DNA from: Marsupella aquatica
Lineage: Eukaryota > Plantae > Marchantiophyta
Reading direction: 5' to 3'
Assembly (NCBI GenBank): GCA_973895155.1
Contig: OZ316898.1
Span: 14,042,330 to 14,106,329 of the forward strand
Length of the DNA stretch: 64,000 bases
In this document: positions 5,151 to 27,423 of the stretch, piece after piece
Position numbering within the stretch: the stretch's first letter is position 1
Layout: every line of letters begins with the position of its first letter
Position numbers and translations under genes: made by a program
Notes under the pieces: generated by a model
Told to the model about the DNA's origin: nothing
Database searches by the model: none
Seen by the model: the letters and a program-made list of their open reading frames with translations, nothing else

Positions 5151-7032
5151 CTACTCTGATGCATTGAACCTCTGCTGCCGATTCTCTCCCAGTATGAACT
5201 CCAGATTTTGTTCCATGTTATCTTTTTTCCCGGTTGCACAGCCATACATGATGTCCCTGATCATCACTCGTTTTTTGTTCTGCACAAAACATGCAACATG
5301 CGTACAATTAGAGACCACATATATGGAATTTGTAATTCATCATTACTAGTGAGTGCGTGCAGGAATTGTTAGGCAAAGCACGCAAACTGAAATACCCCAA
5401 TAATACCCCATACACAGAGTGACTTTATTCACCTTGCAGTCCACGCAAGCACTTCTAATCTTACCTGCAGCTCCAAAATCTTCAACTCAATCGAATCTTC
5501 GACGATAAACCTGATGACTTTCACCGGCCTTGTTTGCCCTATACGATGTGACCGATCGACGGCCTGGTCCTCTACCGTGGGATTCCACCACCCGTCTACC
5601 ATAAGAACATGTGTAGCCTCAGTGATGTTGAGTCCTGTGTTCGTTGCCATCAAGGACAAGAGGATAATGCTGATCTGCATGAAATGAGTAGAAACAGTTT
5701 AATTAGAATATGAAAAGTTTACCCTTTGAACAAATACAGACACCGATCTGCACGGATAATGACGGTCGTACCTCTGGGGTCGTCTTGAAATCATTCAAGG
5801 CTTGTTCTCTGACATTGGAATTCATTCCTCCATCAATCCTTGTGAACTTTAGACCAGCCTTCAGAATGTGTGGCTCAAGCATGTCGAGACACGAAGTCCA
5901 TTGTGAGAAAACAAGAGCCTTCGCCTGGGCACAAAGCTTTCGCTGCTGCCCTGTCCTGTAGTGTCCAGCGGAATCGACTTCAGGTATTCCAAGACTGCAT
6001 CAAATTTTGGAGAAGGTGGGTGTCAGACATCATATTCTCTTCGCGCCTTCCCTTTTGACTCCGCACCACCATTCACTAGCCTCAAATCAGCTGGCCTGTA
6101 TAGGACCTGGGCTGTCACGTATTTTGAACATTTTGCCGATTTGCAGGTTCCAGCTTCCCGGTCTATTGCACAAATGCCACAGTATACATGGCCACAGCCA
6201 GAAATCTGAAATGGACTTCCAATCAAGCCCCCCTGCACAATCCAACCGTTAAAGTGAGTGCGTGCAAAAATTGTTAGGCAAAGCACGTTAATTGAAATAC
6301 CTCAATCATACCCCAATAATACCCCAATCATACCCCATACACAGAGTGACTGTACTCACCTTACAGTCCATGCAAGCACTTCCAATCTTCAATTGCTGAA
6401 ACTCTGACACGAGTCAGGCTCGTTGAGGCTCACTAAGGGGCGTTCTTTGCACTTTGTTCCTGATCTCCTCTTCGCGAATTTTACATAAGGAAGGAAGTTT
6501 CGGGTGCACTGCAAATTGTCGCAACCGGAGCAGAACGCTCAACACATTCGATAAGGCACCTCTTTTGGTGTCACGGAATTCCTACAACATTACAGGCACA
6601 TTAATTGCCACCGAACAGACACCTTCAAGGGATCAAATTGAACTCTCATACGTCTTCAACATTGGGGATTATTAAGAGCCTTACGTACCTTGTATAACTC
6701 CTTACTCTTTTCCTCCTGATCAAAATAAGCATTTCGTTCTTGCTGTGTTCTCCATTCAACAATTTGCACCTCGATCGTCTTAGGGGGCAGTGGGAGTATG
6801 CCTGCATGTAAGCACAGTGGCAGGGTAAATGCACAATTGATAAAGAAATCAGGCTTGGGATTAAACAAAGTGAACTCTACCATGATATATGCATGCACGC
6901 TTACTTTTGTCTCTCCTGAGCGCAATCGCAACCAAGTGTTTCGAGAGGATGCCATTCGCTATCTTTGGCCTTGTCTTCAGCAGCTTCTTTAACTGCGAGA
7001 ATTCCTTCCACTCTCCTAGAGGATAATACCTC
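5151..7032 (-). pseudogene. RAD5/RAD16-like SNF2 helicase with RING finger, 3' half (cargo of the CACTA element)
   Basis: Spliced exons read [103 protein letters not shown]; in-frame stops and a frameshift near 5940; final stop at 5151-5153. Confidence 0.9.
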
Positions 7033-7617
7033 ATCACTATATTCATTAAAAGTGGAATTATAAAGAAGATTTGGAAATTTGGGCATTTAAAAACACACTT
7101 TTAGGCATAAGAATTGTAAATTTGAAGGATGAAAAATGAAAATTTAAGCATCATGAATTATAAATTTGGGGCAAAAAAATAGACATTTGGGCAAAGAAAA
7201 TATTAATTTGGATAATATTAAAAAACATTTGGGTGATAAAAAGTGTTCATTTGGTTGAAAATAGATAGAACGTGTGTAATAACACATAAGCTTGGATAGC
7301 ATCTATACTCAAAACATCTAGCTTGGATAGGATCATTATCTAAGCAACAATGAAATGCTAGACAAGTTAAATATCTTATATTCAAACTAGGATGACATCC
7401 AAGTAACTTAGAATTGCCATCATTTTCTAGAAATATATGTACTAAGACAAAAATAACAATAATTATCAAAAAGTCCATTCAATAACTAAGAAAGATCATA
7501 GAGTATTTGATTGCAAGCCTTGTTCTCTCACTTACTTTAGACAAATGCATGGAAATTAACTTGACCCTCCTACCTACAAGTCATTACATAGTGGACACTT
7601 GTGACCACTCTATCACT

Positions 7618-10600
7618 CTACTCATCAATACCTTCCATGTAAGTTTTGAGAGTTTTCAAAACATTCTTGGGAATTGTCAAACCTCTATCCATAATATTTT
7701 GTTCTTTGGCACCTGACTTAAACCCATACATTGCAGAATTTGCAAACTGCCAACTTTGAGTGATAGTGTGAAACCCAGGATCTAGCTCCCAAGTCTTAGT
7801 GGTCTGAAAGCAACGTTCGTATCGAACATCATCCTTTGCATCATGCTTACCATGTTTAGGCCTCCACCATTGCACTTGGAACATAGGAGCATACCGCTTA
7901 GGAATGCTACTTAGGTGAATGCTCTTAGAAAACCTTGAAGAAGACCCTTCACTAAATTGCAAATCTAGTGAAGAAACCTCATGGTTTGGATCCACACCAC
8001 CCAAAGCTCGAACTAACCAGAAACGTCCTTTGCCATTTTTTTGCTCCCATTCATCCTCTGGACGTAAAAACACAAAGTGACCCTCTTGAATATCTTGTAG
8101 GGGAATCCAACGTGCAAGTTCTCGCTCTTCTCGTGCACCAACGAAGGGTGTAGCTTGACCTTCCATCTCTTCCATGTACTCATTTTGAAGGTCCATCATC
8201 TCTGAATTTTGAGTAGGTTCACTTGAAGGTTGAGAGGTCCCCAAAATCACCTTGTAACCTGTGCCATGGTTAGTCTTTGGCCAGAAATCAGTTGTCAATG
8301 ACAATTGTCTTTCTCCCTCCCCTTCTATTGTAAGTGCCTCAGAGAGTGCCATAACAAGCCTCTCCCAATATTTCACCAAAGGAAATCTCTCGCGGTATGC
8401 TGCAGAGGTCTCATCCTTGCAACTTTTCCTCAAGAAATCAATGTAACGATTAAGGAATGAGATGATTTCCTCGGCTTTCTTTTGTACCTCCCCCGATATA
8501 GGTTTTGCAAATGGTTGGCCCTCCGGTAAAATGAGCGTGTTTGTGATGAGTTCAGTTCTCCAAATTGACCTCCCTGTTGCTGGAAGCCAAGGTTGTTTGA
8601 CATGTGCTTTATATTGATACACTGGCACATTATCCCTCATGGAGAATAGAAATGCCACTGGTTTTGAGTGACCTTCAATCTCTTTCACTTGGAAAGCCTT
8701 CAAATAGTGCTTGTAAGATGCAACCTCCTGAATCAATCGTGGTACGGGATGGATGCTTTCACACTCCCAAACCTCAGCCATCAACGCAAGGAGGGTAGCA
8801 ACCTCTTTGTACCTGACCTGTTTGGATACTTGAGAAAATAGTGCATCCACATCGTCATGGGTGTGGCCAACCATGAGGAATGACATTTGCACAATTTCAA
8901 ACACCCCCTGCTAACAAGCTCGCTGCAAAATGCCATCACATATTGATTTTTATTATCTTTTCCTGAATTGTCCATCTGCAGTGTTAGGTGCCTTGGTAAG
9001 GGCTTGAAAGAGCTCGTAGTCTCAGGATCAACTCTAGAACCAGCATCTGTTGTGCTGGTTTTTTGGCTCTCCTGACCATCATCAAGGCCTTGAAACTTGA
9101 GAATTGAAACATTTTTGGGTTCCAAGTAACCCGCTTGAAATGCTTCAAAGTCCAAAAGAGACTGAAATATTGGCCTAGTTGCGTTCCAATTGAAAGCTTC
9201 AAGCATGTCTCCCGTTTTGTCTCCAGTGTAATCCTCCAAATCTCGAAGGCATTTGGCCAAAGATGTCACAGTGAAGTCTGCATCTCCAGGCCAAAGGCCA
9301 GTCAAACTAAAGTGTGCATACACTCCTGGATCCCTTCCATGGGTTAACATCCCCATAAGGGCAATGGGCAGAGGTTGACCACTACCAGAGAGAGATTTTG
9401 GAGTGGGGACCAATCTGGGGATCCAAGTCTTGGCTTGGTCCATCTTATCATGAATAATGCAAAGATAGTTTTGAGGATCCTTCTTTGCAAGAACCCTATG
9501 AGCATAGTAAACATATCTCCTTGTCATTTGTTCACGAAGATGTCGTGCTCTTTTCTCTTCAATCTCTGCACGCTCTTTTTTTCTCTTCTCCCGCATCAAT
9601 TGATCTTTGAACTCAGTGCAAAATGTGCACTTGGCAAATGCACTGCCCTTGTGAAAGTCAAAATTATCAAAAGAATTTTTCCAGATGTTGTACATGGTAA
9701 CTTCAGTAACCTTAGCATAGCCGTCCAATTCCATCTTTGCAAATACCTCTTGAAAAATCTACTTCTTAGTGAAACATGATGGGAGTCGATATTCGACAGT
9801 ATCGGTGCCGTTGGACCCACCATAGGGAAGATGTGGCATTGGTTCTCCATTTTGGATTAAAATGGACTCCAACAATGCACGAGCATGCAAGGTGCTTGAT
9901 CGTGTCTTATGTTGCCCTTGATTTCCATGGAAACCAATTGTGCACCCAGCTTTGTACTGATTTTTGTAATCATAATACTTTGCCGTACTAAACCCATACA
10001 TTTTTATGAACGCATCCTTACAAACCACACGTCCCTTTAGAACAAAAAATCCTTTTCTCTTGACTTGGTCTTCTCTACACCCAAAAAGATTGAAGATATG
10101 ACTTGTTTTGTTGTCACTTGACATTCCATGGAATTCCCTCCTCATTGCCTCCAAGTCCTCTCTTGGCATGTTCAAGCAACACTTTAACCTGCAACAACCT
10201 TCTCTTTGGATGGAATCAATGGACTCCTCAGTGATTTTCAAAAGCGCCCTTGATTGCAAATGTTTTTTTTTCTCCTCCAGATCCACTTTGGTCCTTCTAA
10301 TGAAATTATAAGGTCTTTTTGGAGGTTTCCCATCACCATCCAAATCCGGGTCACTCTCATTTCGACCCGATTCTATCCACACATGTGAACCTTTCTCAAG
10401 GATATCCCCGAGAAACATTTGAGATGAAATCAACAACAAAGATTTGATTTCCCACCTCACCAAACCTGGAGTACCAGCACGGATATTTGGAAATAATGCG
10501 GGATCGTTGATATTCACAACAACTACACCCACATGCTCTGGACCAAGAAGTTCATCATCAACAGCACCTGCTTCAAAAGGAACTGTGATAACCCCTGTCG

Positions 10601-11351
10601 CAACCTTAAGACAACGAGAAACATCATACAAGTCAACTTCCTCTGCCATCCAGTTGGAACGCATTGTTAAATCTTTCAATGGAAGATCCTTAAACAGGTT
10701 TGCACCCGGGTTTGCACCAACAAACATGCCAGAACCTCAAATAGAGCCTTTTCTTGAAACATCAGCAACATCCCACATTACCCAAGTCTGCATTGCTTCT
10801 TGCACTGTGTCAGCTCCAGGATGCGGATACGGTAATTTTCTATTTCCCTAAACAACCTCTGATATTTGTATACTGACATGGCCAACACCGAGTCGTTCAC
10901 TATGACAAGTGTCCATTGGATTGGTATTGAAGACAACTCCTTTTGATACAAGTTCATCTAAAATGAACATCTCAACCTCCTCTCCTTCAGCAAGGTTGCC
11001 TCCTTTACCACCAACATCCATTTCGGAACATCCTTCATCCCCATCCACTGGAGTAGGAACACCATCCACAGCGGTTCTTTTCGGCAATGTTGAAGACCTC
11101 AAATATGCCAAGGAAGAATCCCAGATCACACACGAGTCAACTGCATCACCTAGGCTCGATGATGTTTTGGATGGAAATGGTAGTGGACAAGATGTTTCAA
11201 GACACCTCTCGATAAGGACCCCAATTCGATTTTTCCCAAGACAAATATTGTGTATAGTGTCTTTGGGATCAACCTTTTGGATGGTCCCAATTGCCACTTC
11301 AAAACCATCAATTATCAATGAAACTTCATCCCCTCGCATAAATTTACTCAT
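7618..11351 (-). pseudogene. Sola-like (DUF7869-type) DDD transposase, about 1240 aa, with three N-terminal Tnp1/En/Spm-like small domains
   Basis: ORFs 10848-11351, 9759-10727 and 8781-9734 share one frame, separated by single TAG stops; a 1-bp frameshift near 8905 joins 7618-8904; motifs FAKCTFC, IIHDKMDQAKT, LQMDNSGKDNKN, FLMVGHTHDDVDALFS. Confidence 0.85.
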
Positions 11352-11527
11352 GGTAGCGAAAGGATATCTGCATCCAAAAACATTTAAAAATTGTTCAGCT
11401 GATGTGCATACTGATAAGCACTACTCTAGATATTATAATTTTAGATCTAAACATTTGAATTCTATTTAAAGGAAAAAAATATTTGGGAGTTTATGTGTAT
11501 TGGCTTTACACAACAGGATTCTAAGGT

Positions 11528-11935
11528 CAGGGACGCTCTTGGAGCGAGGCAAGGTTGCGACGCTCTAGGGGCGAGGCGATTGAGGGACGCTCTAGGGGCG
11601 AGGCGATGGAGGGTCGCTCTAGGGGCGAGGCGATGGAGGGTCACTCTAGAGGCGAGGCGATGGAGGGACGCTCTAGGGGCGAGGTGAATGAGGGTCGCTC
11701 TAGGGGCGAGGCAATGGAGAGACGCTCTAGGGGCAAGGTGAATGAGGGTCGCTCTAGGGGCTAGGCGATGGAGGGTTGCTCTAGGGGCGAGGCGGTTGAG
11801 GGACGCTCTGATGTTGAGGCAATGGAGAGCGGATGCCCTTGGAGAAAAGAAAGGGCAGGATGCTCCTGATGAAAGGTAAGTGTATGACGCTCTTGGAGCG
11901 AGGCAAGGGCATGACGCTCTTGGAGCGAGGCAAGG
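11528..11935. repeat. 27-bp tandem array (GGGCGAGGCGATGGAGGGTCGCTCTAG-like), about 12-15 decaying copies, upstream of the Sola transposase
   Basis: Repeating CGCTCTAGGGGCGAGG units; the ORF-track peptide LAPRA repeats with period 9 aa. Confidence 0.9.
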
Positions 11936-12073
11936 GGAGAGCAAGAAAAGACGAGCACAATCCTGGAGAAGCAAGAATTGTGAAGGAAACGAGAAAATAT
12001 GGAAATGAATAAATCAGGGGAATGATTAAGCTGAATTAGACCATTGAAGTGTGTAGACGTGTGGGTAGACGAG

Positions 12074-12489
12074 TGTGTTGTTAGGAACCCTACATTATCT
12101 AGGGCTTAGTTAGGTCCATATATTAAGATAAAGCTAGGGCCAAATATTTGGTGGATATCATAGAGAAGAAATTAAGAGAATGGTAGATGAAGTAATACCT
12201 CTCTTAAGGACTATAGAAGACATGTCGCCAACCAAGGACACCAAAACTAATGCAATGTACTTGAAACAGGACTTTCCTTGCACGAACTCTTGTAACCATA
12301 AATGTCCAAGTCAGTCGAATCAGTCACCGAACATAAGCAAGATAGACAAGGGCCGAAGGGCGAGACCGAGAGTGAGCAATGACCAGAAACGCACGCGCTA
12401 TACAAAAGAGAGAAATGTTTGGAACTGTAGAGCTTTATACCATTTGTGAGCAAGCTTTAGCCAAGTTTGTCCTAAAGGGGTTCACAACA
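12074..12489. mobile_element. Possible solo LTR inside the Sola-like element
   Basis: TGT(GTTG)TTAGG...CACAACA ends resemble LTR termini; flanks ACGAG/TCGAG match at only 4 of 5 positions. Confidence 0.35.
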
Positions 12490-13244
12490 TCGAGAGGCCG
12501 AAAGTCTGATTACTCTGATTGGCATTTTGTGGACACCCGTACGACCGTGCATCATTTTTCAAAATCTATGGATACCCGTACAGCTAGGTCATTATGAGGG
12601 TTGCGAGTTCACAGGCGCGTGGAAGGGAGCAAGTGGCTGGGTTGCGTAAGGTCGCGTACGATCGGCCGTGGCTGGGGTCGCAGGTAGGATCGGTCGTGGC
12701 AGTGAGGGTATAGGAAGGCAAAAGGCAAAGACATTACCTCATTTGCCTCATTGTCTTCTTGCATCCATCTCCTCCTTCATTGTCTTCTTGCCCGGCTGCC
12801 CTGGTTTCCCTCCTCCCTCTTGCCTCGCTCATAGTAGATTTTCTTGCCTCGCTCTGTTGATTTTGCCTTGCTCATAGTAGATTTTTTTCCTTGCTCTGTA
12901 GCCTCGCTCCGTGGTGTGGTCTAGCTATAGGCGTTCTTGTATACTAGGCTGCCACGTGTCATCTAAACGTTTGTGAGGCATTTTTCAATGGCCACTTCCT
13001 CTAGTTCTGATGATTCTACTAGCACTTCTAGTTCTGGGCAGTCCCTGAACTTTGATTCTAGTAAAATCTTTGAGTATGATTCTCAAGACACTTTACTAAA
13101 GATGTCGGTGGAATCCGCTTTGGCCGCCTCAAAGGGATTTCATATCACAGTTCCACGTAAGTATGATTCAACAATTGATGCAAGTTAGTCTTTGAAGGGT
13201 CGCTCTTAGAGCGACCCTATCTTGCCTAAGATTTGTCGTTATTA

Positions 13245-13537
13245 TTGGTTGGACGTTGATTTAAGTTTTCCTAGGGTCGCTCCAGGAGCGACCCAACTTT
13301 GTTGTTGGTTGGATGTTGATTTAAGTTTTCCTAGGGTTGCTCCAGGAGCGACCCAACTTTGTTGTTGGTTGGACCTTGATTTAAGTTTTCCTAGGGTCGC
13401 TCCAGGAGCGACCCAACTTTGTTGTCGGTTGGACCTTGATTTAAGTTTTCCTAGGGTCGCTCCAGGAGCGACCCAACTTTGTTGTCGGTTGGACCTTGAT
13501 TTAAGTTTTCCTAGGGTCGCTCCAGGAGCGACCCAAC
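13245..13537. repeat. 60-bp tandem array, 5 copies, in intron 1 of the cargo gene; each unit contains the palindrome GGGTCGCTC-CAG-GAGCGACCC
   Basis: Near-identical units in register on successive 60-nt lines. Confidence 0.95.
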
Positions 13538-16500
13538 CCACATGTTTGTTGATGCAGACCTTGTCTCCAGCTCGCTCTAGGGGCGAGGCAACACAGAAAT
13601 ATCTTGCTTTAATGTTTGTCATTTCAATTTGTTTTGCCAGGAGAACAACTTGGATCCCCAGAGTTAAATATTATGGCCGAGGATGTCAAGGACTTTATTT
13701 TCCCTGGACAAGATAAGGCAGGATTTTCATGGGCACTTGAAGTAGGGATCATGGAGAATGACTTGTCGATGATTTGTATCAAGGCAATCACTGCTGAGAC
13801 AATGAATGACAAGAAGATAGTTGCGTTGGGCCCTGTGGTCCTTGTAAATTGCAGTGATAACCGCAATGTTACAATCATTATTGAATCCAGAGAAAGATCT
13901 CAGTGGATGAGACTTTACTAGCCAATCAAGATGTACTCATCAATTATCAACGTGGAGTGGATAGCACGCTCGGAGGCTAGTATTTGTTCAATGGGATTTC
14001 TTCCAGATGGGTTCACTGCAGAGGATGTTCTTGAGAGGCATGGAAGATTCAAATTGAGTGGGGTTGATGTTGTCTTTGGATTCCTCTCTGTGAAGCGGTA
14101 CATGTATGATCATCCGGACCTTATAGATCTTCCTAACACATGGGTTGTCCAGAGGATGATTGAAACAACACGCTTTTCATATGAGCAAGCAATTGATAAG
14201 AGTTTTATTTTCTCTGATGAGTTTGACGAAGATGCTTTCATGAAGTGGATTTCAACTCAAAAGAAGAAGGAAGAAAAGCATTGAGGTAAGGGGAAGATGA
14301 AGATGAAGGCCAAAGAAATGACGTCGGCTGAAACACAGAAGAAGAGAAAACAAAGAGAGCCAAGGAGTGAAGGAAGTACTAGAGGAAAAAAGGCGACATT
14401 GAAGAAGAAAGATAAGGACTCCGACAAGAAGCCCAAGAAGAAGGCCAAGATTGGAAAATCAAAGCCCGTGTCAGCGTCAAAAGCAAGGTTGGTCTTGGAT
14501 CCGGAGGATGATACATGCCCAACAGATGCACCAGAGGAACGAGATGTATTGGAGTGGCAGAAAGCTTTGCGGAACATCGAGCAATACTACACTTTTGGAA
14601 TCAGGGAGGTTTTTGAAATCCCGGTTAAAAGTATTCTTCCGCCTACTGCGGTTTTTGTGTATCGGATGTTCAACCAGGCTCATGCCTTAGAGATAGCAAA
14701 ATGAATGATGAAAAACCCTGGCCAGGAACCACATGTTGCAGATTTGATTCCATTTCTAGAGCGCACTAAGCAGTTGTTACATTTTGACAATACCGCACGC
14801 GATCGGAAGCAATTTTTGTTTGGTGTTAAGAAGCAAGAGATACAATTTCTTGCAATCAGTGGGCAACATTCCGCAAAGGCTGCACAATGGATTCAAGGGT
14901 GGGCAGACAAGGATGCCAAGCTAACTGATCTTGCTAGCAAACTCCAATATCGGAAAGCGAGGATCTTATCAGACCTCACTCCAAGGGCAATTTTGGTCGA
15001 GCACTCGAGCCTTTCAAATGCAGTAAATCAGACCATGCAGTTTAAGTCTTGTTTTCTAGAGACAGTTGTTCATGCGAGAAGGCAATTTGATGAATGTGGG
15101 AAACCACCGCGTCCAGGAATTGGAACAAACCAAAGTACAGACAACCAGAAATACCAGGTAAACATTTTCATTAGTTGGAACTGTAGTTTAATTTTGCCTC
15201 GCTCTTAGAGCGACCCAAATGAAATTGAACGATGAATACAATGATTGCCCCACCATTTTCATATGGCTTTGTCATTTTCTTCGCCTCGCTCTAGGGGCGA
15301 GGCAGAGAAGTTGAAGTTTCTAAGTTTAAACATCTAACATGTTTTTTGGTGGATGAATGTAAATGCAGGATTGGTTTGCCCTCGCAAAGATAACAATGGG
15401 AAAGTCGAGCTTGAAAGCCATTTTTTGGTTGCTCTTTGCTGAGGATAAGCTTTTCCATTTATGGCAAACTGTTTGTTGGGATTGGTTGGCAGGGAAGCTC
15501 CCTGGCGGGGCAGGAGAGTATGGTGGGCCGCGGCCACTAAAGCTGGTCACGCCAACTCTTTTTAGATGTTTTGAAGGGGAGATCAGTTCTAAGGATATCA
15601 TTGATATATTGACCGCGGTTTATGAGAAGAAAGCACTTCTCAAGAAAGATGCCTCCAACAAGATGGATCTGGCCGGTGTCAATGCCAGATATGGCTCATA
15701 CCATCAAGGTAATGACTAAATTGAAGCAAGTCATTGTTGAGTACTTTGTTGAGAAGCACAAGGAGAAGTTTCCCGGGGGGACATCGTGGGCTTTGGTGGT
15801 CAACATCATGCCGGCCTTGGGATCTCAACTTGAGCTGACAAAATTGCGAAGAGCAGCTGGGGAGGTCTACCTTAGCAGTTTATTAAGGAAGAACATTGTG
15901 AAGGAGGCTTTCCCTCAAAGTCTAATGGTGAGATTAGACGGGTTGTACTGCAAACAATTTGGTGGAGTTGGGCGCACACGAACAGAGCCTTTCTTGACGT
16001 TCTTCAGTGAGAATCTAATGAAGACAACCACGCCAGAGTTATTGGAAGAGGCGACGCCAATGTGTCCACTTGCAATTGTTGATTTTAGTAGGGCACGACA
16101 ACATGAATGGACAGATTCGGAAATTTTTGTATTGCTCCAATATATTGTGGAGTTGCCAAGGAATACAACCATTGTAGTTGTCATGACTACTCATCCAGGG
16201 CCACTTCCAGCCAACATCTTAAGTGCCCTAAGGAAATTAGGACATGAAAAGCATTTGGCCATCCATGTTGAATACGGGAGTTATGATCGGGAAGATCGCC
16301 CAAATCCGCAGGGCTTAATTTTTACAGGAGCGATTGAGCAGGTCATTTTTGCTGGAATTATAGGTGAAGACAATTTTGATTGGAATCAATTGTTTAAGCC
16401 AGAGTTCAATTCAAAATTTAGTTTTCACCCCGATGTTGACTGTGATTTCAATATTGAAGTGAAGGCTGACAAGCAAGAGAAAAGCAAGGGAAAAGAGAAT

Positions 16501-17974
16501 GAGACAGAGGAGCAGTCTCCCGCATTTGATATGGCAAATTTATTGCGGCAAGCTCCAATGTTTGAGATGGTCGGAAGTCAAGGAGGATTTGTCAATCCGC
16601 ATGCCAAGCCCCGACACATGCTCAAAAATATTATTGAATGTTTTTCCGGTGAGGGGGAGACTGTCCTCGATTTTTTTTCAGGAGGGCAGGTTTTGAAGGT
16701 GGCCTTGTTGGCATACCGAGATTGTTTTGTCTATTCAGACACTTTGCAAGAACACCATTTCACCCAAGCATATGCAAGGGTTTTGTGCAACAGGATTTCC
16801 TCCCTTATGAAAGAGCGGATGGGAGTACATGGTCCTAGTAGAGCTCATCTAAGTGTTCTTTGCGGGCCTATGGACAACCCCCAACCGGGCCCTCAGCGAG
16901 TTGACCTTGAGGATGGTGAGTTGCAGCATGATGATGGAGGTTCAAGTCCTATGGTAGAGGAGGATTTTGGTGGAAATTGGGATGCTCGAGCAACAAAAAT
17001 GGTTGGCATTACTACCTACGGTGTTGAAGGGCTACCTCAACTCGACATAGTGATGTCGGGTTGCCCTGAGAGTGACCCTCCATCAAATCCTCTCAACCCT
17101 GAAGTATCAAAATTGCATCCCAAGAGACCGCAGGTATCGTGCACATTGGATGCAGGTTGGCAGAATATTGGGGCCACTACACCCACCACGGACCTACAAG
17201 TTGGTATTGCAGAAGCGATTGAAGACAACCTTCCACTTGGAGAGACAACAAATGTTGAAGCTGAAGAGGCAGGTGCTTCAACTTGTTTCGAGTCTCCTCA
17301 ATTTTGTTCGTCAGGGAATAAATTGGTCTTCACAAGGATGTCAAGCGGAAGCCCCATAATATTACGCTTGTCTCAAAAGTCTGGATCTGAGATAGGTAGA
17401 ACAGGATATATGAAGACAGTCCGTCATGCAACTCATTTCATTTGGAGAAATGGACCTAAAGTTGGATTGAAAGAAACGTTGGAGGATGCGCCTAAGTTAA
17501 TGGTCAAACCTGATTACATAATAGACAAATTGAGATTGAGTCCAGTGTTTGCGCCGCCAACGTTGGTGGAGCAGCTTCCTGTTGGCGTCAATTCTGATAT
17601 CCAAAGTGATCTAGGTGATAAAATGATAGATGAATATGGGTCATTTAGTAGTGGAGGTTAATATTATGGTTTCGTTCTTCTATTTTTCACAATAATCTAA
17701 AATATTATGTTTGGAAATCATATATGGACAGACCAAAGTTTTGTCATAGCATCTCTTCCATCGAAGGATATTATTGGTCTACCTTCAGCAAGCGGTACCC
17801 TGGTCCAAGACAAAGCATTTGAGCAAGGTACTTCTACATTGATATATCAAAATGCTTTGACATTCAAAAATGATATGTTTGTTTTCCCCATTAGGTCGGG
17901 TCGATCCAGGTTCGACCCTAAGTTCTTCTTTTATATCTTTTAGATATAATTTTGATTCATTTGGATCTTTGCAG

Positions 17975-19047
17975 ATTTCACTCCTAAATTGCACTCTGAT
18001 ATAAGAAGAAAACTCTTGATTTTGGACCTGAACAAAATTTGTTGGGATTGCGTCAAAACAAAAAGCTCGGGACCATTAAGATCTACAACAACTGTGCGGG
18101 GTGTGCATTGGGGGAGACGGGGTGGATTCAATTTCATGTACGTGGAAAGGCCAGGGTTGCACCAATTTTTGGAGGTGGCTTTCAAAGGTTTTGATGTTGC
18201 ATTGTGGACTTGTGCGGGGAGGCCAAGAACTAATGAAATGATGAATTTGATTTTCAAAGAAGAGGAGCGGAGGCAATTTAAATTTGTTTTCACACAAGAA
18301 GATGCTTTTGATACTGGCATAAAAAGACCGGACGTAGCAGATGGGAAAGCAAATATTATGTTGAAGGATTTGCGTGTGGTGTGGAGTCGTTTTGGAGACA
18401 AGTATGATGATACAAACACTCTACTTATTGATGACTCTCCAGTGAAGGCTTTTGCAAATCCACAGTATAGTGGTTTGTTCCCAACTCCCTTCTCACACAT
18501 TGCCGAGAGTGACACTTTTCTACCAGAGATACTTTGGCCATTCCTTAGAAAATTGTGGAAGGCTTATGACATCCGACAATATATATCTGTCAACAATCCA
18601 CTTTGGTCATTTGTTAATATAAATGATGACCGTGAAAGTAATGCTGCAATCTATGATTTACTTTCCCATAAGTGGGGAAGTAAGATTTGGCGTTCCAAGA
18701 TTGAGTATACCATCTTGGATGTCACTGGAGATGAGATATGTTGGGAAGTGAGGGATATGGTACAATCCTACCCTACATTTGAGAACCTGACCGAAGATGA
18801 TATGAAAGATGTGGTCAACAACTGTTTGGGCGAGTCTTATGCAGGTCCCTTCAGAGAAAATCCTCGCCGATTTGTCTGGGAAGTTCTAAAGACTAGGGAT
18901 CTCACCTCTAAGTTTAAAAACCGTTATCCCAAAGACACTTGCACTCGTGACAGACTATATGACCCAAATGGAGAGCGACTCACTTGTTCAAATCAGTCAT
19001 GTAGACATATTCATGGAGGCATAGAATTTGAAATTTTAGATGATTAA
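17975..19047 (+). CDS. FCP1/NIF-family HAD phosphatase-like domain (open final exon)
   Basis: LLILDLNK (DxN variant typical of plant FCP1-like proteins), RPGLHQFLEVAFKGFDVALWT, KDLRVVW, NTLLIDDSPVKAFANP. Confidence 0.85.
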
Positions 19048-19502
19048 TCATTATGTTTCTGTACATTGTAGGACACAAGATTGGAGTCATGCAATCATTT
19101 TTCTATTTCACAAGTCATAGAACTACTTTGGACTTTACACTAGCTTGACCATTGGAGTAGGATCGACATTATGGCTAGCCAACCTTGAATATATGTTATG
19201 ATAAATGAGATGATTAATCTCACTTTGAATTTAATCATGAGTTTTTGACCAAATGATACATGTTTGTCACTTATCTATTTAATTTCAAATACAATTAATA
19301 TTAATAATTTCTGTATTATGATTAATTGATTAAAATCAAATTTGGAGTGCAAAAGTGTAATTTTAAACCAAAAAGAGTGTATATTTAGTCTTGAAAAATT
19401 GTTTATTTGGAGCAAAATTAATGGACTTTTTAGAGACAAGAATGTAAATTTGAGGATCACAATCTGGACTTTTAAATTTCCAGTTTTAATAAATACTGTG
19501 AT

Positions 19503-21477
19503 CCTCAGAAAACTGAAGTAAGGAAACAGATCAGAAGCCTCGTTCTGTATGGGTGTACCGCTTAGGCACCACCTCCTCTCTGCCTTGAGACAACGCGAGG
19601 CCTTGAAATTTTGACTAGTTTTATTTTTCATGACATGACACTCATCCAGGACTACTCTAAGCCAACTAATCTTAAACAGTGGACCTGCAAGTCTAGGTTT
19701 TTTTACAGGTCTCTTCATACTCCCTTTTGGCACACTGGAAGTCTTTGGAGCAATGGGAGACTCCCCTGTCATGATTGAGTACGTAGTGACAACCACGTCA
19801 TGGCTTGAAATAAAGTTGATGTCTTTATTCCTCTTGTTGTGGTAGAGGAGGACCTTCACTTTTGCTATCTTGGAGGTCCTTGCAGCTATTTCTTGGCCCC
19901 ATTGAATCACCACACTGGCTGGACAAACAACTAGAGTTGGCCCACACTTATGAGGGCGATTCGCGAGAAATAGCGCTATGACATGCATAGTTTTCCCCAT
20001 TCCCTAAAAAAATCCAAGCCAAGAAAACGGTCAGGGACCCACTCACTTGCAGACAAGGTGCGCGCGTACCCCTAACATACTCCAAAAATACCCCCAAAGT
20101 ATTCCGCTGAATGAAAATAATGAGTGCGACTTCGGCTTAATTTGGGGGCTTTTGTACCTGGTCATCCGCCAACATCCCACCAATTGGAGAGCTTTTTCCA
20201 GATTCGCATTCCAACATCCATGCAAGACCAATCCATTGGTGTGGATATAGAGCTATAGTCATTGTACCAGGTGGAGGGCATGCCTCCTCTGTCAAGTGAG
20301 ACCCTTGGATATCAATCTGCGGATCCCGCTCACAGCCAAGTTAGATATGCTTGAACATTGTTTCTGAAAAAGCAGTAATCACACAACAAAGGAAAAAAAT
20401 CGCATGTCCAATTTTTCTGCAAGATCAACCTCTAGCGCACGTATGTGTTGTGATAGAACACGCATGCACTCTGGCATAGAGGGCGGCGATTTGTGCTCAC
20501 CCTGAGGACATTTCTGTTCATCCCTGGAGAATTGGGTCGCAACCTCCGATGGTTGCCCCTCACCGTCAGACGCACCATCCCCTTCCTCGTCCTCTCGTGA
20601 GCCATCTTCTCCTTCCTCGTCCTCTCATCCTCTCGTGATCCATCATCCCCTTCCTCGTCCTCCTGTGAGCCACTGTCCCCGTCCTTGTCCTCTTCTGAGC
20701 CAGCCTCCCCTTCCTCGTCCTCTTGTGAGCCATTGTCCCCTTTCTCCTTGTCGTCCTCCTCATGATCATCTGCGTGTTGTTCGACCATAAGCTCCTCCAG
20801 CGAATACCCTTAGTGTACAAGAATCTGCGTTATAGCAGTGCCACAGTAGCAAGGAAGTCGTTTGTCTATGACACCATTCTTTGATAGGTGTGACTTTAAC
20901 CTGAGGATCTCACTCGTCAGATTATCGTACACCAAATGTGCCCAATCGGGCTTCACCATGGGAGTTTCAGCTCCTCTACAACGATCACGTACCCTAATCG
21001 TATCCCACCAATACGCCCAGTATACCCACATGTCTTTTGAGGTGACTTGAGTGGGTTTGCTCTTGCCTGAGAGCAATTCAAAAATTGCCCTGATTATCCC
21101 ACACCACTGCATATATGGCGCAGTGATTTTGTCTAGACTGTATGGGTTGCCTTTCGTCTTGGCAGAAAACATGGAATTTAGTTGACCTTGGACCAACCCA
21201 GGTTTAAATCGGGCCCATTCTCCAGACGGAAAAGCAAATGCAGCTTGCAATACCTCTCTGTTGAATGTGTGAGTTGCACCCCGAAATGACACACAGTTCG
21301 ACCTTGATCATACCCTACTATGAACTCCTTTACAGCAGGAATTGCAACTCTGGGCCAGTCGAGTTCAAAACATGGAACCAAACCAGCTTTTCTAGCTAAA
21401 TTATGGTCTGCAGGGGCCATCCCTAGATAATGCCGTATTACCCTCCCCGAGCATGACTTCCAAATCGTCTCCGTCAC
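19503..21477 (-). pseudogene. SNF2 helicase gene, 5' half: ATPase N-lobe plus upstream acidic and TE-protein-like region
   Basis: LYPHQWIGLAWM..GGMLADDQ|GMGKT (intron 20004-20157), TLVVCPASVVIQW, VVVTTY, RVVLDECH, RWCLSGTPIQN; upstream ORFs 20810-21292 and 20432-20788 are in frame across one stop and probably splice into it. Confidence 0.85.
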
Positions 21478-22226
21478 GACTATACAAACAAAGTAGGCCT
21501 TAGTTGCGCCATTCTAACAATCGATCAATATACTTCATGCGGAATTAAGAACCAAAGGAGTTGAGTGAAAGAGGGGTACATACGATCTGTGATATCCTCG
21601 TCGCTCTGCATCAACAATGCGACTGGCGCTGGACGATCATGTCGACGAACCATACTTTCACCAATCCTCCAACGTCACCCCGCGCTCGTCGATACTTGCT
21701 TCCGTCGCTAACACCCCAAGTGTTATCCAATGGCAGACTTGTCAGCCACAAAGATCTACGAAACCTACACAATCAAAGACTGGAGCTCAGGAGCTCGCAC
21801 CATTGCCCAAAGCTTATAAGGAATTCCTCATAGGGCGTTCATGTGCGCAGTGGCATGCATCATTTAGTCACTACAGTTTCAGTAGTAGATCTCACAACAA
21901 AGATTCTATCTCCGATCGGTGGCACCGCCCTTTCACTACCCCAACGTACATTTTATCACGTTCCCAAGTAACCTGGTAATACCCATCCATTATGTCATGT
22001 CCGACCCAGAATCCAATGATATTCGTGACCCATGCCGTCCCCGATCATACCCCGTGCGAAGCACCATAGCGTCACCATCACAGGCTCACGTCTGACCTGC
22101 ATCTCACACATCCTACGGTCTGCATCCTGGTCAGTATTCAGTTATTGACAAAACGATGCCTCTCAAGTGTTGTCATATCCCATAGTATCTTTCTTTTTGT
22201 CGTACTTGGGACTTTCCATGGTATTA

Positions 22227-25200
22227 CTATACGGTATTCCACCGTACAGGGATACCATGGTGAAGTCCAATTGCACGAAAATCAAGCCTCAATGCAACTA
22301 ATCTTTGAAAGGTGATGTGTTCATCAATTTGTGACGCTGCCTTGTAGATTGGGCAACTTGACCGAGAACCCTGTACAGACAACCAGCTCACACCAACCTT
22401 CCCGAGGTCCTTCTTATTATGATTTGCATTGTGTGATTCTGCCATGTCATCCCCTCCCTCCTCCTCCTCCTCCTCCCCGTCAGAAGCACCGTCCACTCCT
22501 ACATCCCCCGCTTGCATTTCCGTTGCCGCATCGCGCCTGGGAAGGAGGACTTCCCTTACAACACACAGGTCAGGGATGGAAAGTGAGTCCGCTATTGCAA
22601 TCATTATGTCCCCTACCTTTGGGAAAGGAGGGCAGTTTGCAATTGTGGTAGGGAGTTCCCGTACTAAAGTATCTCCAATCTCCAAGGCTACAACCTCCCT
22701 CCCGCCTCTTCGAATTGGGAAGAACTTGTGTAGAATTCTTGACATAGGCCTACAGTTGTTGCCATGTGCGTGATATACTTTTGGTTCCAAAAGAGTAAAC
22801 AGGGAATACTCATCTCGTTCCCAAGACAGTAAATTTCGCCGAGGATCCTGTGTATACTGTTGTTTATACCAATCCGCCTCAAAGAATATGTCCATGTGGC
22901 CATCGAATTCATGCATGAAAATCTTTTGGAGTACTGCTTTCCAGTTTTGAGGATGTGAAGCATCTGTACTCCCATCTACCAGTACAACAACGTGATCGCC
23001 AGGCCTGTACACTTCAGCTCTCCACACAGCTGATCGCAATGGAGTGCAAGATTCACTAATTTCGTGGTCCTCACTGATGTTGAATACTCCAACATCTGTC
23101 CAATGCTGCTTCAATGACATCCTGGCGGACAGCCCCAGTTTCTTTGTCAGCTTCCTATTTGAGCCTATGCCAACCCCTTTGCTCAACAACATGTGCTTGC
23201 AACCATATGACTCCACAGAGGATATCATACTATCCCACAATTCCATCGCTAGAATTTGACTTGAAACTATTGGCACCGAATTCCTGTGCCAGTGTGGGCA
23301 TTCAGATGGTGGTACAGTGACTCTGCACCTGTGCTCCTTACGATGCTCCGCAGGTACACGCAGGGATGCATGAACTTTCTCCAAAGCCCTCTGATGAGGG
23401 AAAAGTCCATCGTCATCTTCCCAAATGTACGACGATATTTTTGTGAAAAAGCGTCGTGCAAAATGAAGAGAATAAGTGACTTCCTGGTCCTTCTGATTTG
23501 TTCTGGTGTGTCCATAGTCTGATACCATCCTCTCGAAGCGGTAGCACCAATAAACATAGTGTGGGCCATGTTGTTCTATCCCATCAAATATCTCTCCGCT
23601 CCCTAAAAATTGGGATCAAAACACATTGGGATTAGAACATCACCTCAGTGCAATGATGGATCGACCAACAATGAATACCCACTATCATCATGGTCATGTA
23701 GCAAGTGTAAACAAAATGACTCACCAGCAACATGCTCTAGAATTGCTCCATTTGGGCCCCAAGCCTCTTCTGAGCGAACTCTCCAAGAAGCCAGTAGAGA
23801 CCTGCCTTTTTTCAATGTGGCTGTAGTCCAACCCTCTTGTCTACTTCTAATATAAAAGAGGCGTGCAATCTCTACCAAAAGAATCCCAAGCGTCAAGGTC
23901 AGAGTGGACACTAATGTCCATCTGTTGGAGGATATGAGGCAGACAATACAATATGAATCGCGTGAACTCTTCAGCCTTGAAGTATCCCAATCTTTCAAAA
24001 GGTTGTTTAGGCCACCTTCCATCAAAACCTCTCGGTTTCCTAGCAGTAACCTCCTCCAGAGCATCTTCAAACTGTTTTTGATGTTGACGGGGAACACTCG
24101 AAACTAGAAGCTCGCAGTATTTCTTGAAAAGGCACAAGGCAAGGATATGCATTGTATCATACACCAGATCCTTGCTCAAACAAAATCCAGTAAGCTCATG
24201 TAGTCGCCAAGCCCTGGTCATGTTTGAAATCCCGCACTCCCTGCTTATCTTCATCCTCTCTGCAGTTGTTCCTGCCCTGGTCATGTTCCTGGCCGCCTCC
24301 CTCACCTCTTCAATTTTCCGTGTAGGTGGTGGATATCTCATCTGCATCCTATTGTTGTCATACACAGCCCTTCCCAGAAAACCTCGGGGTTGTGATTGGT
24401 CAGTCTCCTTTCGAGGATGATCAAACTTGCACTTCATCCATCGAGTGCTCATTTTACAATTCCTACAAGCGGAATAACCTGTAACATTCCAGCCCCCAAA
24501 TTTACATTGTGCGGGATGATCTCCAGTGAAAACTGCTAACAGTGCTCGTAGCACACACCTGGAGTCATTCGATACATTATCCTCTTCAGCCAATAATTCC
24601 ATAGGGTAATTGTAATCCACCTCTATCCCATCCACAAAAAACTCCTCCAGTTCTCTTATGAATGGTTCTAAGAAAGCATCCAAGCATTTCAGCTTTTTTT
24701 TTCCTACGTCGTCGTCATCACATGGCGGGATAAAAAGAATAGGGATAGGTGGAATTTTGGTTTGAGACCCGGCGCTTAAAACTTGGACCTCTACAGTCTA
24801 GGTGCTTTTGTGGGCAGTCTTGGCAGACTGAAATCCATCCCAGTGTGCCATGAGTGCAATATTTTGGGGATCACCCTGCATGCGGTGGGTCACACTAGTT
24901 AGACAAAAGTTACTCTATCATAACCCATAAATACCCTAAAAATACCCAGACCATACCCTGGTCATACAAAAGTGCGCAACAACAGTAACGCAAGAAGAAA
25001 TCACTAACCTTTGCAAATTGTTTCGGGGCCATGACTCGAGATCCGCAATCTGAGCATTGGAAGTCGTATTGTTTGCTAACATTATCCCAGTTGGCAGTAT
25101 CCAACAACTCAGGACATTTATTTGGTGTTGTTGAATAGCAAGCATAACAGTTTCGGCATAACACGGGAATCTCAAACTGTGTGCCAGTGTCCCAAAAGTA

Positions 25201-26277
25201 GGATAGCTCGGAAGCACGGTAGCCGTCCCACCATTCCTTGTACACAGGTCTGGGCATGGAATCCTTCTTAAACCACTTATCTTTGTCCCTCCACATTGCC
25301 TGGAACTCATGACAAACAGATCGACTGCTACATAACTTCCGCAACATGGGACCAATGGGGAAATATTCAAACCGGAGCATCTCCTTGCGAGCCGTGCCGC
25401 AACCATCCAATGGGCAACGTTCCGAACAACGCAAACAATCCCTGGCTAGATGCCACTTTGTCCCTGCGATTGAACAACTGCACTTCAATCCAGTTTGGAC
25501 ATTGTAGTCATCTTGGTGCGACGGCGGTAGGACTACGGGAGCATGCCAGTTTGGCTTCTGTCCAATACACATTCTCCACCGCTGCATTTTTGGCATACCA
25601 TATGCCTCAAACGTGCCACACAAACCCTTGAATGATGACAATGCATCAATTCCATGGTGTCCTCCATCCCACGTCACACCAGCGTGCCTTAGGAGTGCGC
25701 CCAATCCTACATTTGCCATGTCGGATGGAGGGTCGGGTGAAGGTGTCAAATTTGTAGATGGGGGAATCTGAATCTTCCCGAATAGCATTTTCAAATTGCT
25801 ATCCTGCAATGCCTGAGGCATTTTAGCCTCGTCAAGCATTGATTGTAATCTCCAAGTCTGTCGATAAATTGCTTCGTCCACGGTCAGTATTCTTCGAGGC
25901 ATTATGTGGATACCATACTGCATGGGAAGCGTTTGACCAATCCCATCAACATCCAGGTCCTGCAAATCATTTCTTCCAACGTCATCATTCCCGTCTCCTC
26001 CTGTAAGTGCCCTGTACAACAAAGTTGGGGCCGTATATCTGTGTTCTTGTCGGGACATTTGAACACCTAAGAAGTTGGCAGAATGACCGTCTTGATGCGA
26101 TAGGCCATGGCCATCCGGATGCCCACGGTCCACTAAAAACTTTGCAGGAATGACCCTGCCTGTCTTGTCATAGTTTGCATGTCGTCTTCGATTCCTTGGG
26201 CTCACAAAATCATACCCATCCCGTAAGCGTGAACATTTGTACTGACAGGTGCATTGTTCCTTCGGTTCTGGCGTCAT
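22227..26277 (-). pseudogene. CACTA/EnSpm TnpD-like transposase with C-terminal BAH-like domain
   Basis: N-terminal CTC..C..RRRH; YFPIGPMLRKL; WWDG; IALMAHWDGFQ; LDAFLEPFIREL; FTGDHPAQCK..CRNC; YDTMH; FKAEEF; HGPHYVYWCYRFERMV; then YRPGDHVVV..WKAVLQKIF..FFEADWY. Introns at about 24876-25008 and 23604-23724; one stop near 24798 and a frameshift near 23890. Confidence 0.9.
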
Positions 26278-27423
26278 GGTGCACACTGCCGTTCCTGTGT
26301 ACAAAATATTGCAACGAAGTCGATTCAGAATTCCTCAGGAGGTGGATGTGCGCGGTGGGATTGTCGGAAGGACGATTGGAGAAGTTCATTATTATGTTGA
26401 ATACTGTGCATAATTAGGTGGGGCCCACAGCATTCATGACTCCGGGAAAGCATTCAAACGTCCTTGTTGCATGTGAGCGAATGTGCTACAGTAGGTGGGA
26501 AACCTTATCGTTGACCCTGCAAGCCCGGGGCCACTGCCTCTAATCCCTCTAAGGCAGTCACTCACCATGTTGAATTCATGCTTATGCTATTCAAATTTGA
26601 AGTTCATGTGTATGGTTTTCTTTCTTGGGCAGCTTACTCCGGGAGTTTATTGACATTTTTGGTTCAAAGTGCATGTTTTTTATTATTGTTGGGACATTGA
26701 AATTGTTGTTGGGCCCTGTCTAGGTCTTTATTTATTTTGTATCCGACCCATCCTTTCTTACAATATGGTCTATGTAAATAGAATTGTCATCCAAGCTTTT
26801 TAATGGCATTCCAGTTCACCAAATGCATACCAGCTAGTTATAGGGGCTGGCCATGACATCAGCCATCTCAAATGTCACAAGATTAGTGTCACACGTACTA
26901 ATTATTGTGTGACCCTGAAATACCCTGCTGCCTCAATCTTACGTGCTCATGTCAATTTGTTTTGGGGTTAAGGACCCCCAATGTACCATTTGAAAATAGG
27001 TCATTGGTTGATACCCCCTTCTTAAATGAAGATAGAGTCCCTGGGTCCTTACTCCGTGTATATTAATGGAACCGGTCCGTGAACGTCCCTCTCCTCCAAA
27101 CCCATTTAGTACTATTTTTTGCCCTTTTAAAAAGCTCTTATTAGTATTAATAAATTATTTTTGGGTCATTAAAAAAGTCCTTTAGGCTATTATAATCTTC
27201 ATCAAAATGACATTAAATATGCTCTTCAGGTGTTACAAAATTGTTTTCATCAAAGAGATTCTAAGTCAAACAAATTGGAATAAACATTTCACATTATCAA
27301 AAGCAAAAATAGGAACAACATATTCTTTATGTACACACTTCCTCGCAAGAAGGTAGGAGTCGAGGCATTTAAGAGTCAAACAAACTCATACAAGTATCCA
27401 AATTTAAGTTGTAAACATCCTAC

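Follow-up and report, generated by a model that had tools for sequence, protein, structure and literature searches.

The stretch of Marsupella aquatica (Marchantiophyta) contig OZ316898.1 analyzed here (14,042,330-14,106,329, forward strand; 64,000 nucleotides (nt), referred to below as the window) carries an accessory gene unit of a DNA transposon, for which a five-exon model can be written, and head to head with it a broken transposase gene with a DUF7869 domain (Table 1). The accessory unit codes for a putative ParB/Srx-like region, a helical middle domain and a domain resembling beta-class DNA methyltransferases, and is followed by an exon for a HAD domain of the NIF/FCP1 superfamily. An earlier reading of the same sequence (the original prediction) had joined all five exons into one repaired frame and had seen in it a fusion of a ParB-like, an amino-methyltransferase-like and an FCP1-phosphatase part. 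All similarity searches and folding reported below were done on single exons or on stop-free reading-frame pieces.

Table 1. Features of the accessory gene unit and of the divergent transposase gene, in window positions.
Feature	Position	Strand	Description
Broken transposase gene	7618-11351	-	Four consecutive frame pieces; Pfam DUF7869 (E 1.4e-20 and 1.8e-15), split over the first two (7618-9734)
Palindrome array	11533-11928	not applicable	Tandem 27-bp units, TCGCTC-N3-GRGCGA; upstream of exon 1
Exon 1	12988-13156	+	ATG start; Ser-rich; strong donor CAC/GTAAGT; phase 1
Intron 1 array	13200-13586	not applicable	60-bp units with seven copies of TCGCTC-N3-GRGCGA
Exon 2	13641-15157	+	Acceptor ttgccag/; ends in phase 0; Lys-rich linker, then the putative ParB/Srx-like core
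Putative ParB/Srx-like core	~14585-15000	+	SGQHS motif at 14858-14872; motif-level basis
Intron 2	15158-15368	+	Carries two palindrome copies
Intron 2 palindromes	15199-15300	not applicable	Two more TCGCTC-N3-GRGCGA copies
Exon 3	15369-17656	+	Acceptor aaatgcag/; helical middle domain, beta-class methyltransferase-like domain, low-complexity linker, conserved C-terminal domain ending DEYGSF
Methyltransferase-like domain	~15970-16812	+	Motif IV equivalent DFSR at 16081-16092; motifs X/I at 16591-16725
Candidate intron 3 (or else 3' end and spacer)	17657-17731	+	75 nt, GT..AG, 24% GC; contains TAA at 17659 and an in-frame ATG at 17707
Exon 4 (mini-exon)	17732-17827	+	96 nt; phase 1 at both ends
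Exon 5	17975-19047	+	Acceptor tttgcag/; NIF/FCP1-superfamily HAD domain at ~18010-18576 and a family-specific C-terminal extension

Read base by base, all junctions of the five-exon model are GT-AG with the phases 1, 0, 1, 1, exactly as had been proposed, and after 4 nt are dropped the model comprises 1712 codons and a stop. The motifs quoted in the original prediction were likewise all found at their places, namely ISGQHS at 14855-14872, LAIVDFSR at about 16069-16092 and the motif X/I stretch NPHAKPRHML...LDFFSGG at 16591-16725, and so were its three stops and one frameshift: TAG at 13919, TGA at 14282 and TGA at 14702 break exon 2 in frame, and exon 3 is thrown out of frame by 4 inserted nt near 15671. 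The join between exons 2 and 3 is backed by uninterrupted homologues that cross the same point, such as P0099 with 1009 amino acids (aa). No conservation of the exon 1 and exon 4 sequences was detected among the relatives examined; despite this divergence of exon 4, a phase-1 mini-exon lies upstream of the phosphatase exon in those relatives in which the spacer was examined.

The copy in the window is a pseudogene and should be non-functional, since its three stops and the frameshift would prevent any product. The state of the family as a whole was approached by aligning contigs of four public sequencing runs, the library kind of which is unrecorded, to positions 13600-19100. Word depth over this segment ranged from about 300 to several thousand, with up to 444 contigs per run, and the segment is a multi-copy repeat. 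In the majority of copies, positions 13920, 14282 and 14703 read T, C and C, respectively, and the 4 extra nt at 15671 are missing, i.e., most other genomic copies are free of the stops and the frameshift, and the intact copies sought by the original prediction have a counterpart in a majority sequence that is unbroken at every break of the window copy. Elsewhere, most differences between the two consist of an A or T in the window against a G or C in the majority, the pattern expected if one old, methylated and silenced copy had decayed by C-to-T deamination. The window copy gives nothing beyond what the other genomic copies offer.

A search of 1.84 billion representatives returned only 85 relatives of the methylase-like protein, and the sources that were traced are liverwort assemblies (Calypogeia, Riccia), assemblies of public sequencing runs and environmental contigs. 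In the window itself the Pfam family N6_N4_Mtase (PF01555) was matched with 24.8 bits, below the gathering cut-off of 26.7, and at profile positions 159-205 only, which correspond to the motif X/I segment. A profile of 31 relatives matched M.RsrI with an E value of 3.3e-8. Moreover, the AlphaFold model of positions 15613-16872 predicted with that alignment reached a predicted local distance difference test score (pLDDT) of 82.6 and a predicted template modeling score (pTM) of 0.74, and Foldseek placed CcrM (6pbd, E 5.9e-9) at the top of its matches, followed by PvuII, TTHA0409, MboIIA, BceJIV, RsrI, HpyAVI and the rotifer N4CMT. By predicted structure and family profile, a beta-class DNA-methyltransferase fold with motif IV placed before motifs X and I is confirmed, in agreement with the amino-methyltransferase-like domain of the original prediction, and the segment 16050-16730, where that fold had been anticipated, gave matches to CcrM and other beta-class enzymes.

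The catalytic loop of this fold is a different matter. After the strand LAIVD the window reads D-F-S-R. The motif is covered by 21 aligned homologues, of which 20 have D[FL][STGA][RH] and the remaining one has D-V-T-H. In characterized beta-class enzymes the flipped base is positioned by, and stacked against, the Pro-Pro-aromatic part of motif IV. None of these 21 homologues has that part, i.e., the pattern (D/N/S)PP(Y/F/W) does not occur among them. VNPxxKP and LDFFSGG (TVLDFFSGG), at the places of motifs X and I, which bind S-adenosylmethionine in canonical enzymes, are almost invariant in the family, with a Gly loop one residue shorter than that of RsrI. Since motif IV is lost across the aligned homologues, its degeneration is an old, conserved feature of the family that reaches beyond the window copy, which favors the reading of the methylase-like domain as a pseudo-enzyme, probably used for binding. 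A degenerate equivalent of DPPY had already been noticed in the original prediction; it is family-wide, so a catalytically dead binder, one of the options raised there, is the better reading. The alternative is an active DNA amino-methyltransferase with a non-canonical loop, which would mark the palindromes of its own element with N6-methyladenine or N4-methylcytosine. In its favor, divergent homologues have evidently been constrained to keep the fold and the motif X/I region. Motif IV still begins with Asp, which a conserved basic residue follows, and self-modification has been proposed for an algal homologue by the authors of PMC12477816. However, with the Pro-Pro-aromatic part missing throughout, the short Gly loop and the Pfam score under its threshold, we regard an active enzyme as distinctly improbable. 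Beside this domain, a further conserved domain of about 180 residues (…SSPxFCSS…, ending DEYGSF) is found at ~17100-17650 of the window and in all homologues; it matches no Pfam family, and its conservation equals that of the methylase motifs.

The NIF/HAD domain of exon 5 is confirmed by sequence comparison: Pfam NIF (PF03031) matched over the full length of its profile with 60.9 bits (gathering cut-off 21.8; E 1.5e-16). Among solved structures the family profile found only UBLCP1 (3shq, E 1.3e-10) at E <= 0.001. UBLCP1 is a proteasome phosphatase. HAD motif I reads L-D-L-N-K-I in the window (Asp at 18025, Asn at 18031), and D-(L/C)-N is shared by all seven homologues covering the motif; a D-x-D-x-(T/V) with both catalytic Asp residues is absent from the window and from all of these seven. 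The later motifs are kept, with the Lys of LKDL and the Asp-Asp of IDDSP aligning with UBLCP1 and WTCAG (the S/T motif) read from the sequence, and a family-specific C-terminal extension of about 160 residues follows the NIF domain. Across the family the nucleophilic Asp of motif I is retained. The Asp at position D+2 of HAD motif I acts as general acid/base, and the Asn found there should therefore slow turnover strongly. The FCP1 phosphatase announced in the original prediction stood as a HAD domain of the NIF/FCP1 superfamily, whereas a closer kinship to FCP1 did not, the nearest structure being UBLCP1 and motif I being DxN. The term CTD phosphatase expresses family resemblance only, and dephosphorylation of the RNA polymerase II C-terminal domain (CTD) is a conjecture.

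The N-terminal region shows a conserved order of blocks, IPV..I, a helix, NPG..P.(V/I)ADLIP, an insert and F(L)A(I)SGQHSAxAA, which we take to be the order of the ParB/Srx core elements, with GQH recalling the DGQHR clade. The family motif is (S/T/G)GQHS, in which Ser takes the position of Arg in all members, and the conserved Gly-x-x-Arg or DGxHR box with its phosphate-binding Arg was not found. One homologue gave a single sub-threshold match to DndB (E 0.04) exactly across the ParB-like segment, and the ESM Atlas neighbors of two homologues include ParB_N clusters at 0.89-0.91, which are language-model leads only. On these grounds we lean toward a ParB/Srx fold for this region. For residues 55-250 of P0099, homologous to window positions 14585-15157, the nearest named ESM Atlas clusters (0.95; 190 of 256 features shared) carry DUF3723. 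DUF3723 is a conserved accessory gene of the fungal Starship giant transposons, and these neighbors may mean that giant transposons of unrelated kinds share distantly related accessory proteins.

The relation of the phosphatase-like exon to the methylase-like protein depends on the end of exon 3. The methylase-like frame, a stop-free stretch of 682 codons, ends with the TAA at 17659, two bases past the candidate donor. A constitutive fusion of about 1712 aa, made by the splices 17656->17732 and 17827->17975, would couple DNA binding or marking to CTD dephosphorylation in one ParB-like, methylase-like and FCP1-like protein. This reading is supported by the candidate intron itself, which is flanked by GT..AG, has a length divisible by three, preserves phase 1 and contains less GC than the exons (24% vs 43%). 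The stop is separated from the in-frame ATG at 17707 by only 45 nt, a distance too short to accommodate a separate promoter. Further support comes from the homologue contigs (numbered with L): the phosphatase exon starts at a phase-1 acceptor (cag/AT, AC or GT) in the window and in L001, L002, L003, L004, L006 and L008 (7 of 7 readable), it is preceded by a phase-1 mini-exon in L001, L003, L006, L008 and probably L004, and in the window, L001 and L002 it has no Met before motif I, the mini-exon of L001 being devoid of Met as well. In addition, the GenBank model KAL3690045.1 of Riccia sorocarpa (999 aa), the only annotated Riccia model among the 85 matches, merges the methylase-like and NIF parts; it was the one sequence with NIF when the ten longest or most divergent matches were compared with Pfam.

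Against the fusion, the Riccia model omits HAD motif I and looks like an ab initio merge, and the donor is directly followed by the TAA. No phase-1 GT donor is present at the end of the methylase-like frame in L001, L003, L006 and L008, the four relatives in which this end is readable, and in the whole-library search every one of the 85 matches that reaches the frame end, including the uninterrupted homologue of 1009 aa, stops a few residues past DEYGSF. The two parts are about 1.3 kb apart in Calypogeia, with palindrome arrays in the interval. Furthermore, none of the public sequencing runs on record as RNA carries the locus (library kind unrecorded). The contigs of the four runs over the locus are unspliced and repeat-deep as DNA would be, and the two joints reported in them are a replaced segment and a weak joint with a side of 22 nt, neither of which is a predicted splice. 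The homologue contigs L001-L005, L008 and L018 all retain their introns and are therefore genomic or unspliced. Most likely the methylase-like product ends at the stop after DEYGSF, as judged from the frames of the relatives. Of the single reading frame of the original prediction, the exon 2/3 join is upheld by the uninterrupted homologues, whereas the exon 3/4 join is unproven, with the TAA just past its donor and homologues that end after DEYGSF; the three-domain fusion built on it, with a donor that is not conserved in relatives and no run on record as RNA over the locus, is rather unlikely in our view. As an alternative route, a splice from the phase-1 donor of exon 1 to the phase-1 acceptor of the mini-exon would fit the conserved phases and might yield a separate phosphatase product from the same promoter.

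The accessory unit is tied to its transposase beyond Marsupella. Analysis by tblastn showed that the same transposase protein adjoins the accessory gene in Riccia (L007, divergent) and in Calypogeia (L006), i.e., the linkage is present in three liverwort genera, and the methylase-like gene is followed by NIF on the same strand in all seven other loci that were read (liverworts and environmental contigs). The palindrome TCGCTC-N3-GRGCGA occurs at 21 sites (33 matches over both strands), all of them within 11533-15300, compared with 0.11 matches expected by chance; introns 1 and 2 and the region upstream of exon 1 contain all copies. Different palindromes, again arranged in arrays in or beside the same gene unit, were seen in Calypogeia and Riccia. 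Within the promoter region shared by the transposase and accessory genes, the array at 11533-11928 may serve as a binding site. That the unit belongs to a transposon, as the original prediction had it, and to one with many copies is borne out by the divergent DUF7869 gene, the conserved linkage and the high depth over 13600-19100. The Sola-like identity proposed in the original prediction is putative, the DUF7869 match being the result obtained for the transposase. The opposite possibility, that an independent phosphatase gene of the host happens to lie beside an unrelated, decayed methylase-like pseudogene, could appeal to the separate reading frames and to exons 1 and 4 without sequence conservation. 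However, order and strand are the same in all seven other loci, together with the transposase, and the whole of 13600-19100 is high-copy in DNA runs; by the conserved linkage this possibility is largely refuted, and we give it almost no weight.

Some further observations were made around the element. In Calypogeia fissa (L006), the interval from the end of the methylase-like frame to the phosphatase exon contains palindrome arrays (CGCCTCGAGAT..ATCTCGAGGCG) at 12026-12611, which could indicate a second promoter or else belong to a long intron. A frame of 170 codons on the minus strand of the window (11462-11974) crosses the 27-bp palindrome array; it is probably no gene but a by-product of the repeat period, 27 being divisible by three. 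A literature search on DUF7869 found no papers. Directly downstream of the accessory unit, the minus strand at 19275-26304 carries a fragment of an SNF2-family helicase (19275-19997; Pfam SNF2-rel_dom, 1.1e-33) and a Transposase_21/tnp2-like piece (23847-24680), which look like a second, unrelated transposon or gene.

Taken all together, the best explanation, to which we assign a probability of about 0.6, is that the window holds a decayed copy of an accessory gene unit on a multi-copy, cut-and-paste liverwort DNA transposon of about 12 kb, the product of which would be a sequence-specific tether and not a working methylase. The predicted proteins of intact members, with about 1000 aa or more, show a ParB/Srx-like motif pattern, a helical middle, a beta-class methyltransferase fold and a small C-terminal domain. 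We propose that the N-terminal part would recognize the palindrome arrays of its own element, that the pseudo-methylase fold would add binding of DNA or S-adenosylmethionine (SAM), and that the phosphatase-like unit might bind, or slowly turn over, a phospho-protein at the divergent promoter of the element. The phosphatase could be made by optional splicing (exon 3->4 in the family of this genome, or exon 1->4, both in phase 1) or as a product of its own. As an outcome, transcription or transposition would be tuned, or the element would be shielded from silencing. A bolder version holds that intact copies possess a three-part self-recognition system, with a ParB-like reader on fast-evolving palindromes, a rewired methylase fold that writes or specifically reads a DNA mark there and an optionally spliced CTD-phosphatase-like module that targets the transcription machinery at the divergent promoter. 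If true, this would be a transposon's private control of its own chromatin state; we consider it a long shot.

Several points weigh against the tether explanation. The transcript structure, including the reality of exon 1, is a model, and to this belongs the above-mentioned result on RNA runs. Terminal inverted repeats were not found between ~6000-7700 and 19040-19700 by an inverted-repeat scan and local alignment of the flanks. The loss of catalysis is read from motifs, and the conserved LDFFSGG and VNPxxKP could mean surviving SAM binding or an unusual activity. Binding of the protein to the palindromes is put forward as a hypothesis. Finally, the ParB/Srx assignment is unproven: no ParB family was matched in Pfam (E up to 10), NCBIfam or PHROGs, the profile search of the N-terminal region against the Protein Data Bank (PDB) gave no ParB structure, its AlphaFold model from an 11-sequence alignment was unusable (pLDDT 39), and hhalign against eight YbdM/IbrB-type ParB proteins (Escherichia coli YbdM and seven from phages) returned a probability of 0.4%. 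A tblastn search of one homologue against phages lent no ParB support either. The ParB-like domain of the original prediction was motif-based, and it found confirmation in none of Pfam, NCBIfam, PHROGs, PDB profiles, hhalign and AlphaFold.

To our knowledge, accessory genes that combine ParB with a DNA modifier on giant DNA transposons were first reported in 2025, from brown and red algae only. The closest known system by architecture is Sola1-1_Ec32 of Ectocarpus, the protein sequence of which was not among our matches: this 21.5-kb element codes, opposite to its transposase, for an accessory protein of 1104 aa with ParB-like and DNA methyltransferase domains (Genome Biol 2025, PMC12477816). 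The liverwort element is likewise a large DNA transposon, and its accessory gene and transposase gene are transcribed in opposite directions. In both accessory proteins an N-terminal ParB-type region (putative in the liverwort) precedes a prokaryote-type N4C/N6A methyltransferase domain, and for both a role in binding and acting on the DNA of the element itself is proposed. In contrast to the algal element, the liverwort family resides in a land plant host, is without the catalytic motif IV in all but one aligned member, and has a NIF/HAD unit following in its loci; the main text of PMC12477816 makes no use of the word phosphatase. In the red alga Bostrychia moritziana, the Plavaka genes PAG2 and PAG3 code for an N6A methylase with SET and for ParB with a 2-oxoglutarate (2OG) oxygenase, respectively, and inverted-repeat tandem arrays lie beside PAG3 (bioRxiv 10.1101/2025.02.11.637652). 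Here, too, a ParB-type domain and a DNA- or chromatin-modifying domain are found on a giant transposon, and the repeat arrays of PAG3 mirror the liverwort palindromes at 11533-15300. However, Plavaka belongs to another superfamily (Plavaka/CACTA-like), has other partner domains on separate proteins and no phosphatase, a word likewise absent from the main text of that report (bioRxiv 10.1101/2025.02.11.637652).

At the level of single domains, the bacterial and phage beta-class methyltransferases (CcrM, M.RsrI, M.PvuII and M.MboIIA) share with the liverwort proteins the fold, the permuted order IV, X, I and a recognizable motif X/I, whereas the liverwort family departs from them by D[FL]x[RH] in place of (D/N/S)PP(Y/F/W), by the shorter Gly loop and by its sub-threshold Pfam score. 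METTL14, the inactive partner of METTL3, offers an analogous case and was also among the fold matches. With UBLCP1 and the FCP1/SCP (NIF) phosphatases the liverwort exon shares a clear NIF domain, the alignable LKDL and IDDSP residues and a visible WTCAG, in contrast to which its motif I is D-x-N and not D-x-D and its C-terminal extension is its own. The ParB and methylase design itself is already published for algal transposons, and the liverwort unit is a variant of it. What the liverwort family adds is that it carries this design, with a ParB(-like) part, into land plants, that its methylase fold, conserved without the catalytic loop, points to a probable role as a binder, that a phosphatase-like unit with an altered active site (DxN) is attached in all the loci read, and that its element-specific palindrome arrays lead to the testable hypothesis that they are bound by the element's own protein.

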